A DNA stretch of 64,000 nt from Trichosphaerium sp. ATCC 40318. Taxonomy: Eukaryota > Protista > Tubulinea. Of the stretch, positions 23,016-36,587 are shown piece after piece. The notes beneath the pieces were generated by a model, which was given only the letters and a program-made list of their open reading frames with translations, was not told where the DNA came from and searched no databases. The position numbers and the translations under genes are program-made. Each line of letters begins with the position of its first letter. Position 1 is the first letter of the stretch. The stretch spans positions 209,930 through 273,929 of the forward strand of contig JALMLS010000520.1 in assembly GCA_038496445.1 (NCBI GenBank), given 5' to 3'.

Positions 23016-23320
23016 CCGGAAGATGGAATTTTTTTTTGTACTTTTAAATCAATGAGAATAAAACATAGCAGTTGTTGGACTTCTGCATCTAGAAATTAAA
23101 TACAATTCAATTAACTAGCCAGTATTCATGTCAAGTATTAGTGACGTCTATTCTGTTACTAAATTGTTTACAAGTCGGATGCCGGATGTGAACTTAAAAA
23201 GATATGACACGAAAAGGATGTGAAAGAAGTCATTATAAGAGTGCAAGAAATATACATTACTGAGAGCGAATATAATCTAGAATTTACGTGTAAGTGCTTT
23301 GCTCTTACGCTTAATTAGAA

Positions 23321-23392
23321 GTTCCCTTAGCTCAGAAGGGAGAGCGCCAGGCTTCATCCAGGCGGTCGTGAGATCGATACTTACAAAGTTCA
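23321..23392 (+). pseudogene. Degenerate tRNA-like sequence
   Basis: Intact D arm (TAGCTCAGAAGGGAGAGCG) and T-like arm (GTGAG-ATCGATA-CTTAC), but unpaired acceptor stem and mismatched, shortened anticodon arm. Confidence 0.6.
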
Positions 23393-24038
23393 TATTATTT
23401 TCGAGAATTGTGTTTATAGTGTACTTTACGGCAGCAAAGGCTTAGGTTTAGGAACCTTGACCTTCACACATCAGAAAAAAACGTTTTATTTCATGGAAGC
23501 AGCAATTGAATAAGCCCGTACGATTGATACTTATTTTTCTGCTTTGCTAACACTCAGTTGTTGAGGAAATGTGTTATTGATGCTAAATACCTCCCATCTT
23601 TAATTCGGAGGCGATGTGGCATCTTAAAAATATCGTAAAAAAGTAAAACCTAAATCAACATTGGTTTTAGTCTCTTCATGTTTTGTCCTCATGCTGTGCT
23701 TAGCAAATCATATTGATTATCGCGGAAAAACGCAACCTATCACTTACATTTAATAACCAGTTCCATTTCATTTCAAAACGAATTATCACGTGATAGACAA
23801 GACAAAAGAAATGTTGTTGGAAGTTCAGAAAATCTCTTGTTAGGCAATAGTCAAAACCGCTAGATATTTATTGTGACAAGTACCATTAAATATTACATGA
23901 TGACAATGAGGTGGAGAAATACCATGCTCCAAATAGTTCTTCAATCGGAGTCTTGCTTTTTTTTTCCACTCGTATTAATTATTCAGCAATCACTGCCACA
24001 CAAGCCAACAATAGTAAACACCCCTTGTTTCTACTCCT

Positions 24039-25904
24039 ATGGTTCTGTATCAATGTAGACTGTTATGTGGATGCCTTCCTGCGCGAAACAAGAGCCAAAT
24101 GGCGGTACGCATGAGATTAAGATCAGGCATATTCCGAGCGCTTGTTGGTACGCTGAACTACAACTATATCTAATAACGGCAGTTTTGGTGTTTATTAACT
24201 CGTCAATCAGGTATTTTGAGCGCCGTTATATTCACGTTTTTCTTCCTCACTGTGGCGTTTGATGTATATTCAGTTAGCGTTTTCAGAAGTAGAGATCAGC
24301 TTCTCCAGGACACAATAGCTGTCACTGACGCCATAGCATCAGAAAGGGTATGGGCAACTATCGTTATTGGGACTGATGGGCGTTTTGGAAAATCAACTTT
24401 TGGTACGAAATGCCAACAAACACGCTTATGTCACGTGATTATTTTCTTACGAACTAAGACCCTGTATTTAGCAAACCGTACTAGTGAAGTTGATAAGAAG
24501 CTGGAAAGACTAAGAAAGGATAGAGACAATACTCTAGGAAATTATGAACGGCTAAATACAGCAATTCAGGCATACGATGACTCGGGCATTGTATTTCACC
24601 GTGACAAGGTAATAGAACGCCTAGTAGTTCTTTATATTGATGGCACTTAGGTCCTTAACCTTAGCATAAGCGGAGAGGCGTCGTTGAAATACTACACGAC
24701 ATTAAACAGGTTTTATTTCGATTTTTTGAGGAGAGATAGTTTCACCAATATTGAAGCTTCAAGCAGGCGTCTGTTAGCGCTTGTACGTATAAATATGGTA
24801 TGTTTGTGATTTTTTTTCTAATTACTGCGGTGACGTCACTAAGAGATTTTTTCAGCTTCATGAATACTCCTCGGAAGAACGTGGAGCGTTAAGTTTCCTC
24901 ATATTAAGCGGTAAACAATAGAATCTGATCAAAATATGGAATACATTTGACTTCTTGTTTAGGGTCTTACAGAGATGATAGCGTTTATTCTAATATAATA
25001 CGTATTCTATCTAATAAAGACGCTATTCGTGAGGAACTAGAGTTATTATTAGAACATGATGATGAAGATTTATACAACGAAATACTTGTAAGTCAACAGT
25101 CTTGTTTACTTTCTCGACTCATTTTTTTGAATAGAATAATTCAACAAATGTTCAAGCAACTAACATAACCGATTCGATGAGAACAACTTTATTAGACGCC
25201 CATGTAAATAACGCATCTTTTAATCTTAATGTTGGTCATTGGTTCAATAATATGTCCATAGTTGTGGATATGATGGAGCCTCTTCACAAACATATTTTGT
25301 ACGTTTTACTTTTCTCTTTTTTTTCTCTTTTTTTTCTTTTTTTCTGGAATCACGTGGTAAAATATTGTTTTTATGTATGCGCCATAAATTTTGTAAAGAG
25401 ATACTCAATTAGTTTTTGTAAAAACATGACTGATTGATTCTTATTTTTAGTGACAAACATGAAGCTTTGCTCCGAACGAATTTTATATACTTCGTTTTTG
25501 CGTTTGTCTTGGCCTTGATTGGTCTCATCATAGAAGTCATTGCGTGTACACTACTTATATACCTTGCTTGGCCAGTTCTTAAGTTATTTTGGACGATGGA
25601 AGGAAAAGCAAAAAAGTAAGAACTCGAAGATTTCATGTCATCTCCTGTTTCCGTACCTCTTTTCTTGTCTTTGTTAATCACGTTTAGGGTATCAAGTACA
25701 AAATCTTCTACAGCGAATAGTACAGACCATGTAATAGACGCTATGCCAACACCAGAAGTGACGCGAACTATTAAGAAACATAACACATTAGAACTTGTTA
25801 TCTCGGATTCTACTGATACAGAAATATCGTCATTACAACAACATACAATAGAAGAACAGGATATGGAAGAACAAAGCTCTGAATTAACAACAATGGAGAT
25901 GTAA
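24039..25904 (+). CDS. Two-TM membrane protein with NIT (nitrate/nitrite-sensing) domain between the TMs and no recognisable output domain; true start may lie upstream (about 23811)
   Basis: TM1 (ALVGILSAVIFTFFFLTVAF); DAIASERVWAT..IGTDGRF...RTSEVD; FHRDK|VLNLSISGEASLKYYTTLN; HEYSSEERGALS; GHWFNNMSIVVDMMEPL; TM2 (FIYFVFAFVLALIGLII). The order and spacing match my recollection of the NIT consensus (ERG...R..tD; R..v...s..ea..yY; E....ER; WF...t..id). Confidence 0.72.
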
Positions 25905-26279
25905 ACACTTCTTTGTTTGAAAAAAAACTGCCCTTGTCTTCAACAACTACCAATGATGATAGTCTGGACTTTTCAGAACCGATGGTAAAGCCACTAATGA
26001 CTTTTCAACTCTGCAAACTCCCTAAAAGCCCAAATGTATTTTATAAACCAGATTTGTTCGATATGTTCCTCATTGTCGAAGTTCCACGCGCTATGAACTC
26101 TTTTTTTGTTCGATTTTTTATTCTAGCTTTGTTACCATTACCCAGATAGAATCGATCAGGTGATGGATAAGCTAAACTTAGGATGATTGTGAATGTGTAA
26201 GCACTTTAATCCATCAGAAATATTTGATATTAAAGAGCTTCCATACTAGCTACTAGCAAATAGCTTTTTACTCTGCTAC

Positions 26280-26485
26280 TTATGCTTTATTTACAGCTAT
26301 TGTACTTATAGTGAGGTCTACAACGTTGCTTAGAATATGAGACCAGTGTTTAAACTTAGAGCAAGAAACCTCAGATAACCTCTTTTCCGTGTTGATCATA
26401 ATAAATACTTGAAGAGGAAACACATCGGGAGAGCTATCATCACCAATATAAACTTCTGATAACTTGCCCTTAAGAGCTAGTGTAT
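26280..26485 (-). pseudogene. Orphan 3' fragment of the F-box gene at 50037-50873
   Basis: About 80 nt nearly identical to 50715-50795 (LALKGKLSEVYIGDDSSPDVFPLQVF), plus similar SNVVxLT; no upstream homologous coding sequence seen. Confidence 0.75.
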
Positions 26486-27095
26486 TTGGACGTACAAACA
26501 TAAAGTGATAAAACTTTGCAGTATGTAAAGTAATAAATAAAATTGTAAACTAATGGTAACGTTCATCGTTTGTGCCTTGCAGAAATAATGTAAGTGATTT
26601 TCTTCAATATTGATTACTAGTGAAGAAAATAGTGTTCTTTGCTACCTTAACACCCGATACAATTAATACTTAAGCGAGGCTTTAGACATTCTTGTCAGGG
26701 TTTGTTGTTTTCATTGCAAGTCTGTTAAACTTAAATGTTATTTATATTTAAGGTGGTTTATTATACCACTCCCATCGACGTGAAAAACTATCTTTAAGTC
26801 AGTAATTTGAATGGGTATCATGTACCAAAAACAATGTTGGTCACGTGTAGTTTGAAGAAAACAACAGTCCCTCGTTTTCTTGAAATTGCTTGAACTGAAG
26901 TGTTGCATAAAAAGAAGGCAATTTAGTCTGTCTTTTGGTGAATGTATCGACAACTCAAGGTCTTTAGATTGCAGGTCGGACAGGAAGAGTTTACTATTGA
27001 ACACAAGCATTGATCAACTTTGCTACTGTTCTTTTACGCATCGATTAGTGATGCAGAAAACAACAAAAAGCAGTTTGTAATTAGCTTGCTTCAAT

Positions 27096-27687
27096 TTATT
27101 GGATTTCAGCCTCAAGTAGGTCCTTTACTATCTGTTTTTCGTCCTCATATAGTTCCGCACCAGCTGCTTTCACAGCAATTGCCCATGATTGCGCCCAAAC
27201 TTCACCAAAGAAGGCTGCCAAACGCTTTGAGTATCCATACGTTTGTGCCAGCGTGCCATTACCTTCATTTTCACGCCATGATTTCATGCCACAAGCGTGT
27301 GCAGCTCGCCAAACCTTGTACTGATTTAGTACCACGTGATAAATAAAAAACAGAATGTGATACTTTGACTACTAAAAGAAAAGGAATGTCATACCTTCGG
27401 ATTACCAAAAGTGTCGAAAGTCTTTTGTAGTGCTACCGAAGCAACAGTGAACAATAAACCGGTTTCAGTGGAACCAATCCTAACAGTTAAGTTAAAACCC
27501 AAAGTCTGACTGTGTAGAACAAACGTACGCGTTGATAAGTTTTGTCTTTGTTCTGAGGATTTAAAAAGTGATTTATAGCCTGGTGTATTGGGTTACTGCA
27601 GATTGACAAACTTTTTATAGCCAAACTCGATATAGCTTTTATCTCTTTGTCAATGTCTCTTTCAGTAAGTTTTATTTCCAGTGTCAT
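27096..27687 (-). CDS. Small hypothetical protein (about 140 aa, 3 introns)
   Basis: Can be spliced to MTLEIKLTERDIDKEIKAISSLAIKS|..KTKLINA|IGSTETGLLF...GNPK|YKVWRAAHACG...EAEIQ* using GT-AG introns; no family recognised. Confidence 0.6.
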
Positions 27688-28679
27688 TGTCTTGTAGTTG
27701 CTGATTTTATGACTATTTTACAGTTCGTGAACAGGTTCACAGTTCCTGTAGGAAGGTTTCTTTTCAAGAACCAAGCGCGCTTACATTGGATAGAAGCAGA
27801 TAGTTTTTATTTGTATTTTCACTCGTCTTGTTTAGTTCCTGTCTGTTTTATACAAAGAAGTTAATGCCATAAGAAGGCACCTACCAATGGTTTAACAGGT
27901 TGGTCATGTGCTATTTTTGTTAGTTCCTTTCAAAATGAACTAAATTTCCAACCTACCAGCTGAATATTTGTTACAGTTTCAATAGACCGTGGGAGATGAG
28001 CGCAGTATTTTTACCTACAGTACGATCAAACCACAGTGTTCAATACGCTAACAACGAATTAAAAAGGTTTGATGTAGTACAAAGGTATCGCATTACCGCC
28101 AAACACGGTATGAATACCTCAAACACTGTTTGCTGTATGTCTTACTCCAAAAAATCAACGTACGTGTATAACTTACTAGCGCTACGCTAGCGCCTACCCC
28201 ACGCTAACAAAAGCCCTCTCGCAACATCCAAACACCAAGGCACGTGTAGTAACGCTAAAATCTCCAATAACACCACCAGGTGCTGTAGGCTTTGTAAACG
28301 CCGCCGGCGGGTGTCAAATATCAAAATAAAAATTGTTGGTTTGTTAAATCACGTGTTGAATTGATTGGCCCAATAACGTGGGTTTGAAACGGTTGGATTC
28401 GCTGGACAGGCTTGAGGGTCATGTTTAAAAATGTGAGATAAATTAAATCTCTTTTTTCGTAAACTTTGCCTTCTACAAAACCACGTGTTTTGAGCCCTTG
28501 AACATTTTTTGGAAAAGCCTTGCTTACCCTTGGAAATTACCAGTTTTAACTCACCATGGCCTCCAAAGCCAATTTTTTTTCCACTAAACTAATCGAAAGT
28601 TGTGTTTCGGATAACGAGAAGCTTGTTTTTTTTATTTTCGTTAAGTCGATTCAAAACCTAGTGTCCAAAAACAACAACA

Positions 28680-30592
28680 ATGGAAAGCCTCAGGTTTCCA
28701 ATTAATTTGCAAACAGCTTATGAATACTATCTCCAAAAGCATAATGATGATTTTCAACACGTAAAATCAAAAGAAACACCCATACAGCGTGATATGTTTG
28801 ATGCTGACGTCATTTCTGCGATTAATACCGTTCTTGCCTCAGCAGAAGCAGAAATGAAGTCCAAGTTAGCCGCAGTACTCTCAAACTTTACTAAGGCGCT
28901 CCCTCGCTCTACTGACAAGCACAAAGACTCGGTCGCTTCAGAGCAAACTAAAAACGTCTTGCGAACAACGTACGTGCCACTCTTACCCACAGAATAAGTT
29001 ATGACATAGCCATGGCACCTGTATCAAGGCGTTCGAACCAGCAAAGTTCAGTTTTCGTTGAACATCATTTTGTGTTAAACTAACTTTTTTAGACCAACAG
29101 CAATTGGCACGTGTTTATTAGACCTCCCAGTAGAAACTATGTGCTTGATTCTACAATACACATCTACGGCAAGGTACAGTGCTGCACAGACATGTAAATC
29201 ATTCGCAGATATTATACATCATGTAATTGGCTATGTCACTGCAAAAGTAAAGCCACATGATGCACTTGCTATTCGTCACTACAAAGGTAGGTTGTAACAT
29301 CTTATACAACATATTTGTAGATAATGATTTGTATATTTACCTTTCTTCTAGGTGTGATGACAAACACTTTGATAACTGTTGATGCCATGTACAACAATAC
29401 AACACATTGGTTTTCAGGATGTAAAAAACTTGCCTTTCTTTATAGTTTAAAAGAAGTTCAACATCTTTCTGGTATTCACAGTATCGATGTTTCACATACA
29501 AATATATCACATGAATCCATCAAAGGGCTTGCTGGTGTACATACAATTAATCTTAAACATACTCCAGCGACAAATGAAAGCATTGCGTATCTAAAGGGTG
29601 TACATACTATTAATCTTACTTCCACCAAAGTTTCTGATGTAAATGCCCTTCAAGGCGTTCACACATTAGTCCTCCGTTGTACTTGGATAGACGATGAAGG
29701 TATAAAGGAACTAAAAGGTGTACATACAATTGATCTTAGCAATTGTAGCTTTATATCAGATAAAGGTTTGAAAGGCCTTGTAGGAGTACATACAATTAAT
29801 CTTCATGGAACCAATGTGAAAAACCAAGGTCTGGCTTACCTAAAGGGTGTACATAGTATTAATGTTAGTAGCTGCTCAAGTATATCAGATCAAGGTATAA
29901 GGGAACTAAAAGGTGTACACACCATTGACCTCTTTGATACCTCAGTATCAGATAAAGGTGTCAAAGCACTTGCTGGCGTTCATACCATTAACTTGAGTGG
30001 CACTAAAATAACAGATATAGGCATTCAAAAGCTTAAAGGAGTTCATATCATCGACCTGGCTGAAACTAAAGTCACTGATGAAGGAATAAAAGCACTCAAA
30101 GGTGTTCATAATATTAACCTGAGTGGGACATCAGTAGCAGATGAAGGTGTGAAAGCGCTTGCTGGTGTTCATACTATTTACCTTAGTGGTACTAAAGTAA
30201 CAGACAAACGCATTCATGCACTCAAAGGTGTTCACACAATTGATCTTTCCAATACTAGTATAACAGGTAAAACTCTATCTTCATTGGCTGGTGTTCACAC
30301 CATTGATCTTTCAAAATGTCCCATTGTTAATGGTCTATCAGCGCTCAAAGGTGTTCATACAATTTACTTGCAATATACAGACATTACAGACAACGATCTA
30401 AAAGCTTTAGCTGGTGTTCATACAATTGATCTAACTGGCTGCATTTCTGTTACAGATAAAGGCGCTATGGCACTTGCTGGCAGTCTGCGTAAGATTTCAA
30501 TTGTTGAATCTAAAATAGGTTATTATACATTAGATAAACTTCCATGTGTAGCGCTTTTTGATGGCCTTGGTGGCTGGGATACGAGAGTGTAG
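28680..30592 (+). CDS. F-box + leucine-rich repeat protein (GVHTIxLSxTxVTDEGIKAL repeats), 3 introns in 5' part
   Basis: LLDLPVETMCLILQY F-box at about 29115; more than 12 tandem 22-24 aa LRRs in one large exon. Confidence 0.9.
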
Positions 30593-30842
30593 TTAGAATC
30601 AAGCCCTACTTTGAAGAGCCTTAATTATGCTGCTCAATAAAGTTGTCAAACTACGAATATTTTTTATTCTTTTGTAAAAATCAATGTGAATACCATTCTG
30701 TTGTTCGAATCTTTTACAAATAAATGGTTAAGCTTTTGTAGGTTGTTCTAGAGTTGATTCATGTGGCAGTAAACTAGCGTTGACTCAGACTTTTTACAAT
30801 ATGAGAAAACACGTGAGCCCAAATAACGGACCACAACAAATC

Positions 30843-32177
30843 ATGAGTTTTTCTTGTTTATTAGTAGAAAGCGCACTAGAATATTATCGTAAGCGCCACG
30901 CTGAACGGTTCGGTAAAGTAATGGCAATACAACCCCAAACAGTCATGGCAAAGGTAGAAAGTGTAATTTCGAAGTTAAATATGAGTATTGCATCACAGCT
31001 CGATCAAGTTCTTTCAAAACTCTCAGATTCAATTGGTTCTACTCAAGCTAGCCAGTTAACACCTTCATCTAACGTTGAATATCACAAGCACAAAAGAAAA
31101 GAGATGTACATTAAAAAAAAAGAGTGTAACAGTAAACAACCAATGCCACGTGAAGAACTGAATATTATCACTTTTCTCCCACCTGAAGTTATTTCAAATA
31201 TTCTAGAGTACACAGATCAAAAAGGTAGATTTTCTGTTGCTCAATCGTGTCGCCTTATGGCTGATCTCATTCATCATGTTGTTGGATATAAACATGTTTA
31301 TCTCAAGCAATACCAAGATATTTTAAAGATAAGACAGTACGAGGGTATTATGAAAAACACCGTTATTCAGATGGATGTGTGGTATATGAATGATGATTCA
31401 ACAGTATATTCGTTACTATCAGGGTGTTGTAAACTACAACTATCAAGATATAACAGACATATTCTTGACGGTGATCTGCAAGAAATAGCAAGTGCAAACC
31501 AAGTTAGCTTTATGGATCTTTCCGGGGGATCCAGAAGTCTTACAGATGAAGGTATTAAAGCACTTGCTGGTATTCATACAATTAACCTGCGAGAGTGTAA
31601 GTTTGTGACAGACGAAGGTGTTAAAGCGCTTGCTGGAGTTCATACCATTGACCTTAGCCACTGTATTCAAGTTACTGACGAAGGCATTAAAGCACTTGCT
31701 GGAGTACATACCATAAATCTGAATGATAACTATATGTTGACCGATGAAGGTATAAAAGCTCTTGTGGGTGTACATACAATTAATCTAAGGAACTGTGAAA
31801 ATGTATCTGATGAAGGTATTAAGATGTTAAAAGGTGTACACGAAATTAGCCTCAATTATACTTCAGTCACTGATGAAGGTGTCAAAGCACTTGCTGGCGT
31901 TCATGCTATTGACCTTTCCAATACATTTGTTACGGATGAAGGCATTAAAGCGCTTGCAGGAGTACATACAATCCATATTATTGGTTGTGACAACGTGACA
32001 GATAAAGGTATCACTTCATTGAACGGTGTTCATACTATTAGTATTGGCAGAAACGTGACAGATAAAGGTGTTGAAGCATTGGAACGAGTTCATACCATTT
32101 TCTTTTCTCATGAAAATACCAACATATCAGCATTGTGTATTGCCAGGCTAAAAAAAGCCTCAGTGAATGTGATTTAG
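30843..32177 (+). CDS. F-box + LRR protein, intronless paralog
   Basis: IITFLPPEVISNILEY F-box; about 9 GVHTI-type LRRs; single ORF. Confidence 0.9.
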   Translation: MSFSCLLVESALEYYRKRHAERFGKVMAIQPQTVMAKVESVISKLNMSIASQLDQVLSKLSDSIGSTQASQLTPSSNVEYHKHKRKEMYIKKKECNSKQPMPREELNIITFLPPEVISNILEYTDQKGRFSVAQSCRLMADLIHHVVGYKHVYLKQYQDILKIRQYEGIMKNTVIQMDVWYMNDDSTVYSLLSGCCKLQLSRYNRHILDGDLQEIASANQVSFMDLSGGSRSLTDEGIKALAGIHTINLRECKFVTDEGVKALAGVHTIDLSHCIQVTDEGIKALAGVHTINLNDNYMLTDEGIKALVGVHTINLRNCENVSDEGIKMLKGVHEISLNYTSVTDEGVKALAGVHAIDLSNTFVTDEGIKALAGVHTIHIIGCDNVTDKGITSLNGVHTISIGRNVTDKGVEALERVHTIFFSHENTNISALCIARLKKASVNVI

Positions 32178-33668: not shown

Positions 33669-34955
33669 AGTGGTTTGTACATGCGAAAGGATAAAAAATA
33701 AAGAACTTTATTGCGGTATTGGGTTTTGGTTCTACTTGCACTTGTATCTCTGATCTCACAGGTAAGTTGTTATGTAAGTCTTCTGCCGTAAAGTATTTCA
33801 TAGCACCTAACTGTAAACTCTGTACGCTTAGTTAATTCTTGCGGCGCTATCAAAACGATAGAAAATGGCGACATCTTCAACACCAATAGTACAACCAGCT
33901 TGAAATTCGAATCACTAGTGCCACTGCTGGTTCCCATGCATACCTACTTACCATAGACAGGGTTGACAAAGCAAAGGTCCGTACATAGTCTGAGTTTTTT
34001 CTTTTTTTTTGTGATCGACAAGCTCTCTAATTGTTTTTGGTTGTTCAGGTTCAGACAACAAACCTACCACTCATAGGTAAGTCTTTTACCTGCTTCTGAC
34101 CAGCTTGACTCACGTGGTAAAAAAATCCCGAGAAACAAATGGTGCGAGTTTCATTTTTAAACTATAAGCAGCATAGAGGATGTACGCTCAGATATTGACA
34201 ACTCACCAATTTGCTTTTATTCTTTTGAACGTTAGTCCTAACATTTGTGTTGTAGCGCTCGCATTGGTTATTAAATTACGTCTTGATAGATAAAAATAAT
34301 AAGGTAAGATTTGCTAAAAAAACCTCAGGTTTATTTTCTACACGCAAAGAAGTCTAAGTTGTCATGATTTTACCCTCTGTTTAACACAATTTTCCACAAA
34401 ACGCTTCAAAATAACCAAATTATTTTTTCATGTACATGTGCGTTCGTGGAACGTGGCTACATGTAATAAATCCAATAATATCTTTCGTCGTGGCCATTTT
34501 TTGCCTTTTTTAACTAGAAATGTGAAACGTCAAGGTCTTTTATGGCGATCACGTTTTTTTTTTGTTTTATGTAACTTTCTTTTGCGAACGTTGTATCCTT
34601 CCACAATTACAATTGGTGAATACAAAAAGTCAAATATCGCGTGACAATCTAAATACAACTAAAAACCGTTCGTAATTTTCAAAACGGACCATTGTTGCGA
34701 AAACTACACATTCTGACACTGTCTTTTTGATTTTTGAAAAAAAAACACGTGCATGTCATCTGGCGTTTGGTTTGTCAATACTTAAATTTACATTGTCGCT
34801 GCAGCATTTTTAGTGTAAAACAAAAGTAATAATCGACAAAAACCCACCTACCAACCAAAAAGACAGTGTCAGAATGTCGTTTGCAAATTACGGCTTCACA
34901 ATACGATAGTTCTATTCTCAATAAATTCTTACTTTTCTTTTTCTTTAGAAAGGAA

Positions 34956-36587
34956 ATGTCTTCTTCTTCTTTGAGTTTACTTGATCTCCCACATGAAATT
35001 CAACAAGAAATCTGTACATTCAACATGGAAACTTTCACAAAATTTCATACTTTATCAAAGAACGCAGCAATCAATACACATTTCGATGAATCTCTACAAC
35101 GCAAGGGAAAATGGATCAGATGGTACAAAACAGGAAAAGTACAGTCCATTGAATATTCGAAAAACGGGCTAAACCAAGAATGGTATCAGAATGGTCAAAT
35201 AAAAGAACAATGGAAGGTAGTTAATGGCAAAAGGCATGGTAATTCCAAAATGTGGTATGACAATGGACAACTTGAAGCACAGTGCACGTTTGTTAAAGGC
35301 ACGCAACTTTGTGAAACTAAAGAGTGGTATAAAAATGGGAACATTAATGCACAAAGTATGTGGGTTGATGGTAAACTAAGTGGTGATGTGAAAGTATGGT
35401 ATGATAACAAACAACTTTCTTCGTGGGAGATTTATTTGGATGGTAAGAGAAACGGTGAAGCCAATTGGTGGTATGAAAATGGGCGACGTAATACACAAAC
35501 AATGTGGGTTAACGACAAGCGAAACGGTGAAGCCAAGGAGTGGTATGAAAATGGACAACTTAAGGCACAATCCATGTGGGTTGATGACAGACAACATGGT
35601 CAATGCAAAGTATGGCATGAAAATGGACGAATTAAGTCACAAGCCATGTGGGTGGATGGCAAGTTACATGGTGAATCTAAGCAATGGTATGAAAATGGAC
35701 AACTTAAGGCACAAGCCACGATGGATGACAAACAATGTGGTGAATCTAAGCAATGGTATGAAAATGGACAACTTCAGGCACAAGCCATGTGGGTTGATGG
35801 TAAACAACATGGTCAACATAAAGACTGGTATGTAAACGGACAACTTAAGTCACAAGCCATGTGGATTGATGACAAGAGACAAGGCGAAGTTAAGGGATGG
35901 TATGAAAATGGACAAGTTCAGGGACAAGTGATGATGGCTGAAAACAAACGACATGGTGAATGCAAATTATGGTATAAAAACGGAAAACTCCAGCAAACAA
36001 GCATGTGGATAGATGGCAAGAAACACGGTGAAATCAACGAGTGGTATGAAAACGGACAACTTAAGGAACAAGCAAATATGGTTTACAATAAACGGAATGG
36101 AGAATTCAAAAGCTGGTACGACAATGGAAAACTGAAGATACACAGCTTGTGGGTTGATGGTAAACAAAACGGAGTTACCAAAGAGTGGTATGGAACTGGT
36201 CAACTATTTCGACAAAGCACATGGGTAGATAATAAGAAACATGGCGAAACCCATGAGTGGTATAAAAATGGCCAACTTATGACCCAAAGCATGTGGACTG
36301 ATGGGAAATTATATGGTACAATGAAACAGTGGAGTGAAGATGGAAAACCAACGGAAGAAGACGATAAACAAATCAAGAGATGGTTTAGTAGTCGAAAAAC
36401 CAAGAAACAAAATCGCTTTGGTATTACCTACAACAAAAACAAGAAAAGAAGCAGCAGTTTAATGATAAGATCATTCAACACAATATTGTTCCCTTTCCAT
36501 ATCTTACGTCGTTTTGTGTGGGCATGGTTGAGGTACTTTTCAAGTGCATTTTATTCGTCAATGATGTTTTGGTCAAAAAAGAAATAA
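34956..36587 (+). CDS. F-box-like + MORN2-variant (YwqK-like) repeat protein, intronless coding region
   Basis: LSLLDLPHEIQQEI N-terminus; about 17 repeats of WYENGQLKxQxMWVDGKxHGExK; basic/aromatic C-terminal tail. Confidence 0.88.
   Translation: MSSSSLSLLDLPHEIQQEICTFNMETFTKFHTLSKNAAINTHFDESLQRKGKWIRWYKTGKVQSIEYSKNGLNQEWYQNGQIKEQWKVVNGKRHGNSKMWYDNGQLEAQCTFVKGTQLCETKEWYKNGNINAQSMWVDGKLSGDVKVWYDNKQLSSWEIYLDGKRNGEANWWYENGRRNTQTMWVNDKRNGEAKEWYENGQLKAQSMWVDDRQHGQCKVWHENGRIKSQAMWVDGKLHGESKQWYENGQLKAQATMDDKQCGESKQWYENGQLQAQAMWVDGKQHGQHKDWYVNGQLKSQAMWIDDKRQGEVKGWYENGQVQGQVMMAENKRHGECKLWYKNGKLQQTSMWIDGKKHGEINEWYENGQLKEQANMVYNKRNGEFKSWYDNGKLKIHSLWVDGKQNGVTKEWYGTGQLFRQSTWVDNKKHGETHEWYKNGQLMTQSMWTDGKLYGTMKQWSEDGKPTEEDDKQIKRWFSSRKTKKQNRFGITYNKNKKRSSSLMIRSFNTILFPFHILRRFVWAWLRYFSSAFYSSMMFWSKKK

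Follow-up and report, generated by a model that had tools for sequence, protein, structure and literature searches.

A two-pass NIT-domain protein family in the marine amoeba Trichosphaerium, with no recognisable output domain and a conserved inner module

The NIT domain is established in bacteria and occurs in animals attached to guanylate cyclases; to our knowledge, little is understood of how eukaryotes perceive nitrate or nitrite outside the cell. A NIT domain placed between two transmembrane (TM) helices, with no other domain, has been described in the alga Pelagomonas calceolata as an 'external' NIT-sensing protein (Guerin et al. 2022, PMC9481584). This protein was proposed to be an extracellular nitrate/nitrite sensor and is over-expressed in low-nitrate waters; its homologues were found only in pelagophytes, dictyochophytes and one cryptophyte (PMC9481584). 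A soluble example is the bacterial regulator NasR, whose E-R arginines are needed for the nitrate/nitrite response (PMC7496416, PMC9581486): the E175/R176 pocket is located in helix 5 (PMC7496416), and the R50A and R176A mutations abolish the response to nitrate (PMC9581486). Among the animal proteins, Platynereis NIT-GC1 needs its NIT domain for the response to an NO donor (bioRxiv 10.1101/2023.08.02.551600). A first-pass annotation of a 64-kb stretch of Trichosphaerium DNA (the window) had reported an orphan NIT receptor. The word orphan was too strong, because the same design has been published for P. calceolata (PMC9481584) and the ESM Atlas contains a NIT-only cluster of ∼ 386 aa.

The gene lies at 24039–25904 on the plus strand and comprises nine exons and eight GT-AG introns, with a CDS of 1311 nt that encodes 436 aa. 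The introns are 42–152 nt long, mostly 42–72 nt; their number, put at about eight from the genomic letters, is exactly eight. Exon 1 (24039–24147) holds the start codon and a conserved, predicted cytosolic N-terminal peptide (aa 1–37), and exon 2 (24211–24402) the first TM helix and the first E-R motif. The NIT domain continues through exon 3 (24472–24608; first four-helix bundle, with junctions taken from transcripts), exon 4 (24651–24797; preceded by the 42-nt intron), exon 5 (24856–24910; second E-R motif, opening the second bundle) and exon 6 (24963–25087; second bundle), and ends in exon 7 (25135–25298), which also carries five N-glycosylation sequons. The second TM helix is encoded by exon 8 (25451–25615), and the disordered Ser/Thr/acidic, predicted cytosolic tail by exon 9 (25688–25904), which closes with a TAA stop at 25902–25904.

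Contigs assembled from public runs of two separate studies (X1, 2015; X2, 2023) were aligned to 23300–29200. All eight splice junctions are present in the X1 contigs, where intron 7 appears as adjacent pieces of one contig, and a JGI transcript contig (L003) confirms 8/8 as well. In X2 seven are seen directly and intron 7 falls in a skipped repeat. L003 is 100%/99.5% identical to the window in unsplit blocks; its gapped blocks, which span introns, are 78–98% identical. The mRNA covers 23963–26061 on the plus strand: the 5′ end of L003 is at 23963 (that of X2 at 23863), and non-templated A residues at the other end of L003 place poly(A) addition at ∼ 26060–26061, ∼ 157 nt past the stop codon. 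The first-pass annotation had asked whether cDNA would extend the gene by further 3′ exons; with poly(A) at ∼ 26061 it shows no splice to a catalytic domain. No joint leaves exon 9 in the X1 and X2 contigs over 23300–29200, and the next downstream gene is on the minus strand (CT..AC joint 27312/27393). An MMETSP ORF annotated as 'complete' (P0004, 436 aa) equals the exon model residue for residue. The GC content of the gene is that of its flanks which, together with eight spliceosomal introns, shows that it resides in a eukaryotic genome and does not stem from contaminating bacteria. It is a nuclear gene of a marine protist, and it is expressed, spliced and polyadenylated.

Some details of the transcripts deserve separate mention. 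Intron 3 (24609–24650) is only 42 nt long, in frame, and contains a TAG; it is spliced in both X1 and X2 (joint 24606/24649). The long leader of X2, starting at 23863, includes upstream ATGs at 23897, 23900 and 23906 that open a 61-codon uORF (23873–24058, plus strand) overlapping the main start codon out of frame, whereas the short leader of X1 and L003 (23960/23963) is without these ATGs. The alternative leaders could be a means of start-site-dependent translational control. A further contig (X3, 25782–26533), which has a SMART template-switch oligo at 25782, extends well beyond the poly(A) site at 26061 and shows many substitutions and small deletions. It may represent a read-through or longer 3′ UTR form from a divergent strain or allele.

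For full-length searches we used the database entries P0001 and P0004, both identical to the exon model; P0001 is a database copy that starts at Met24, was recovered by exhaustive search with a 144-aa piece, and clusters with P0004. A Pfam search, as proposed by the first-pass annotation, matched P0001 to NIT (PF08376/IPR013587) with 75.3 bits against a cutoff of 24.9 (E = 1.2e-20). The match covers profile positions 2–230 of 239 and corresponds to aa 74–305 of the 436-aa protein (ending at nt 25284). An exon-by-exon Pfam scan gave no NIT match; this blank reflects the low power of short queries and not absence of the domain, the signal appearing only at full length. The 144-aa query, the longest stop-free piece (exon 2, intron 2 read through, exon 3), found in an exhaustive search of representatives only itself and two spurious Kazal-like or repeat proteins. 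Sequence searches of the PDB (phmmer with the exon 2–exon 3 piece and with P0001, and a five-sequence profile) returned only chance matches such as keratin, gp120 and haemoglobin, and missed NasR.

The fold was approached through an AlphaFold2 model built from a five-sequence family alignment. Its mean pLDDT is 59.8, with values of 76–91 in the first bundle; the second bundle, the N-terminal peptide and the juxtamembrane part are poorly resolved. The model is all-helical and forms two four-helix bundles as in NasR. Foldseek ranked NasR (4akk) at the top (E = 1e-3, probability 1.00, TMt 0.52), all remaining hits having E ≥ 0.2 and TM < 0.2. VIA-align, a search independent of Foldseek, superimposed model residues 41–323 on residues 9–287 of the NasR chain with Z = 25.4 and an rmsd of 3.9 Å over 270 residues, the runner-up reaching Z = 11.3; the comparison with NasR suggested at the outset came out in favour of a NIT fold. 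A fold search of the ESM Atlas with the entire model was uninformative (TM scores < 0.3), and NIT clusters made up 19/20 and 23/30 of the ESM Atlas feature neighbours. The likeness to NIT is far beyond chance.

The sequence motifs on which the NIT assignment had originally been based are all in place. ASERVW occupies 24336–24353 and contains E81-R82 (24342–24347); EYSSEERGA starts at 24862 and contains E203-R204 (24877–24882), followed by G205 (to 24885); and W291-F292 is encoded at 25240–25245 in exon 7. E81-R82, E203-R204-G205 and W291-F292 are invariant across the paralogues. The structural alignment starts at model residue 41 and NasR residue 9, and this offset, which is not a residue-level alignment, puts R82 on NasR residue 50. 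From motif likeness and the alignment offsets we infer that R82 and R204 would occupy the pocket positions of NasR R50 and R176.

Two hydrophobic segments flank the domain, as the first reading had it: TM1 at 24213–24281 (aa 38–60; KD19 peak 2.09) and TM2 at 25488–25592 (aa 323–357; KD19 peak 2.86). Seven Lys/Arg but no acidic residue occur in the N-terminal peptide, TM2 is likewise followed by Lys/Arg, and 7/9 N-x-S/T sequons lie between the TM helices. Helices are continuous in the model from residue 30 to 90, joining TM1 to NIT helix 1, and from 288 to 367, joining the last NIT helix to TM2. These features predict a topology with the N-terminus inside, NIT outside and the C-terminus inside, that is, a type-II-like two-pass protein with a glycosylatable NIT ectodomain. 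The order of parts is a basic Cys-rich N-terminal peptide, TM1, NIT, TM2 and a short acidic Ser/Thr tail. This tail, estimated at about 70 aa in the first-pass annotation, measures 79 residues after the LKLFW motif and is 30% Ser/Thr with a net charge of −8; residues 353–436 have pLDDT < 50 in the model.

Pfam finds nothing but NIT in the full-length protein: no HAMP, MCP, HK, GGDEF or cyclase (PF00211) domain was matched. With a disordered tail and NIT as the only Pfam domain, the description as a TM-NIT-TM protein without a signalling domain holds, and the protein has no recognisable enzymatic or other known output domain. The flanking ORFs likewise contain neither cyclase nor kinase and encode TIG, F-box/LRR, MORN and NHL proteins. 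Among the neighbours are two long intron-poor ORFs (29324–32177 and 34866–36587, both on the plus strand) built from 24-residue 'GVHTI(D/N)LS' leucine-rich repeats, of which the latter also has an F-box, and a 573-aa ORF of MORN_2 repeats (E = 4e-61) lies in the same window.

Relatives were sought by word and profile searches of 5.8 billion proteins within a length window of 240–763 aa. Only three clusters were found: the NIT protein itself; P0005, 60% identical to it; and P0006/P0007/P0008, 36% identical, which represent two tail isoforms and a fragment. All family members are 402–445 aa long and contain PF08376 only, and for P0005 and P0006 a match to PF08376 was already precomputed. The contigs of the paralogues and L003 derive from one JGI sample, so the paralogues belong to one organism. 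A tblastn search with the exons located no paralogue inside the 64-kb window. The first-pass annotation had looked to NIT-cyclase or NIT-kinase paralogues as possible partners, but no such protein occurs among the relatives of 240–763 aa. The data show a small family in Trichosphaerium, with at least three expressed paralogues of common architecture.

Two of the paralogues have peculiarities of their own. The P0005 transcript (L001:1-260), which is polyadenylated ∼ 40 nt past its stop, retains, after ...RALVG, an intron that sits exactly where the window gene has its intron 1. As a result the gene caller began P0005 inside TM1, the true N-terminus being MVLYQCRLLCGCIPARNKSQ... P0006 and P0007 differ in the tail only, one ending in ...MSEERM (414 aa), the other continuing with ...MSEEQVGSVTTESSS... 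(445 aa). This points to alternative 3′ splicing or a retained intron as the cause of the loss of most of the Ser/Thr/acidic tail.

Conservation within the family is inverted. Compared with the distant (36%) paralogue, the NIT domain is 29% and the C-terminal tail 27% identical, whereas aa 1–41, the N-terminal peptide, are 78% identical (32/41; binomial P = 3.5e-11) and so are aa 338–360 (18/23; binomial P = 7e-7), against 27.8% outside both modules; the P values are descriptive only, because the conserved regions were picked after viewing the alignment. The peptide carries the motif MVLYQC.LLCGC with conserved Cys6/10/12. The second region, EV.AC..LIYLAWPVLKLFW (nt 25533–25601, exon 8, plus strand), belongs to TM2 and the adjoining juxtamembrane part and is conserved among the paralogues; it includes the conserved Cys342 and Glu338, the single buried acidic residue of TM2. 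Only eight of the first 36 codons are identical in DNA and 19 differ synonymously, and the TM2 motif matches P0005 at 29/30 residues with 15 synonymous differences. Judged by their coding sequences, the N-terminal peptide and the TM2/juxtamembrane motif are under purifying selection. Gene conversion was considered as the origin of the conserved peptide and rejected, given synonymous changes in 19/36 codons.

A region search with TM2 and the juxtamembrane part found the module in no other protein family, and a metagenome scan with the patterns LIYLAWPV and LKLFW gave 186 pattern matches and zero relatives. The conserved inner module is a new, testable element of this family. It was overlooked in the first reading, which had named a partner or a phosphorylatable tail as the signalling route; the N-terminal peptide and the TM2/juxtamembrane module are better output candidates than the tail. 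Their conservation points to docking of a partner at the membrane; the tail is a less likely route.

We propose the following mechanism. A small anion of the nitrate/nitrite type would bind at the bundle interface that holds the invariant E81-R82 and E203-R204, by analogy with R50 and R176 of NasR. Because TM1 runs on into NIT helix 1, and the final NIT helix into TM2, the binding signal would cross the membrane by helix displacement, as in bacterial sensors of the NarX/Tar type. The signal would leave through the only parts that are near-constant between paralogues, namely the N-terminal peptide, possibly S-acylated on Cys6/10/12, TM2 with Glu338, and the juxtamembrane helix LIYLAWPVLKLFW with its aromatic residues. 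As a set, they would most likely offer a docking face to a putative partner protein encoded elsewhere. We consider it somewhat more probable than its negation that this explanation holds as a whole, from a NIT anion sensor through helix displacement to partner docking at the conserved inner module.

That no output domain is present would also suit a protein that is no signalling receptor at all. It could be a transporter subunit with an accessory or regulatory role, a receptor for sorting, or a partner of NIT-enzyme receptors that acts as a decoy or in a dominant-negative way. The N-terminal peptide and the TM2 motif would then serve trafficking or oligomerisation, and the conserved module could indeed have a sorting or oligomerisation role instead of a signalling one. 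Acidic Ser/Thr clusters and Cys-rich N-terminal peptides are common sorting or acylation signals, and a buried Glu in TM2 favours TM–TM association. However, the relatives of 240–763 aa include no NIT-cyclase or NIT-kinase, and diverging ectodomains combined with a constant inner module in three paralogues resemble a family of sensors with different specificities that feed one pathway. We regard an accessory, sorting or decoy function as unlikely, though worth keeping in mind.

Similar weight, and slightly less of it, goes to the tail as the output, such that ligand changes the phosphorylation of its Ser/Thr/acidic residues and recruits effectors in the manner of arrestin or 14-3-3 proteins. 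In all paralogues the tail is disordered, acidic and 30% Ser/Thr, and some positions recur (T386, E388, H396-N397 and S404). Against this, no part of the protein is less conserved than the tail, the P0006 isoform is without most of it, and CK2-type S/T-x-x-D/E sites show no enrichment (3 vs 4.5 expected from shuffles). A phosphorylation output, one of the two routes named in the first-pass annotation, thus seems improbable.

The inner module, made up of the acylatable MVLYQC.LLCGC peptide, the buried Glu338 and the LIYLAWPVLKLFW helix, might be a new transduction device for output-less eukaryotic receptors. It would act either as a partner-docking site common to paralogues that differ in ligand specificity, or as the gate of a two-pass channel opened by anions. 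We think this reading rather doubtful; if true, it would in either form supply the first mechanism for the reading of extracellular nitrate/nitrite-like anions by a eukaryotic receptor that has no enzyme attached. More improbable still is a ligand-gated pore, in which two-pass oligomers would form an anion-gated channel on a P2X- or ASIC-like plan with Glu338 of TM2 lining the pore. That plan combines a pair of TM helices with a large ectodomain and with conservation of the N-terminal peptide and TM2, and the Trichosphaerium proteins, with a conserved N-terminal peptide and TM2 and a single buried acid in the latter, recall such two-pass ligand-gated channels. Yet the searches linked the family to no channel by sequence or fold, apart from Glu338 its TM region is very hydrophobic, and NIT and four-helix-bundle sensors are known as dimers that signal by helix motion. 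Finally, the locus might be only a piece of a longer gene, a pseudogene or a bacterial contaminant. This notion of an artefact, which the blank exon-wise scan and the mostly bacterial occurrence of NIT might have encouraged, scarcely merits belief, being refuted by the spliced contigs with their eight introns, the poly(A)-tailed cDNA, flank-like GC, a complete ORF identical to the independent transcriptome ORF P0004, and paralogues under purifying selection.

Returning to the proposed anion sensor with a docking face, three paralogues that combine divergent sensors with a near-fixed 41-aa N-terminal peptide and TM2/juxtamembrane motif provide a handle for finding the putative partner. The ectodomain of the Trichosphaerium protein has its closest structural counterpart in the NIT domain of NasR from Klebsiella oxytoca (PDB 4AKK), which shares the double four-helix-bundle fold with an E-R motif opening each bundle. 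NasR, however, is soluble and cytoplasmic, is fused to an ANTAR RNA-binding output, and is only ∼ 11–16% identical to it in sequence. The bacterial TM-NIT-TM chemoreceptors, histidine kinases and GGDEF/EAL proteins have the same topology and membrane-continuous helices (Shu, Ulrich and Zhulin 2003, as cited in later papers). These sensors carry HAMP and an output domain after TM2, where the Trichosphaerium protein has only ∼ 79 disordered residues. The animal NIT-guanylate cyclases are eukaryotic; their NIT domain lies between TM segments, and the two conserved arginines are present (Moroz et al. 2020, PMC7400543). They end in a cyclase domain (PF00211), whereas the Trichosphaerium protein has none and its mRNA stops 157 nt past the stop codon. 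By language-model features, the ESM Atlas cluster closest to the Trichosphaerium protein is 'Nitrate/nitrite sensing protein domain-containing protein' (similarity 0.92, 189/256 features in common). It consists of eukaryotic NIT-only proteins, mostly from Arthropoda, whose length of ∼ 386 aa is comparable, and is a lead from features, not from an alignment. Its arthropod members may be fragments of NIT-cyclases.

The protein of P. calceolata resembles that of Trichosphaerium in being an output-less TM-NIT-TM protein of a marine protist, a likeness of architecture and not one drawn from sequence comparison. The two hosts differ, Pelagomonas being a nitrate-assimilating stramenopile alga and Trichosphaerium an amoeba, and the conserved N-terminal peptide and TM2 motif are not described for the Pelagomonas protein (PMC9481584). 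The Trichosphaerium family is a new lineage of this already published design, and the presence of output-less two-pass NIT proteins in an alga and in an amoeba suggests that the design is a recurring one.
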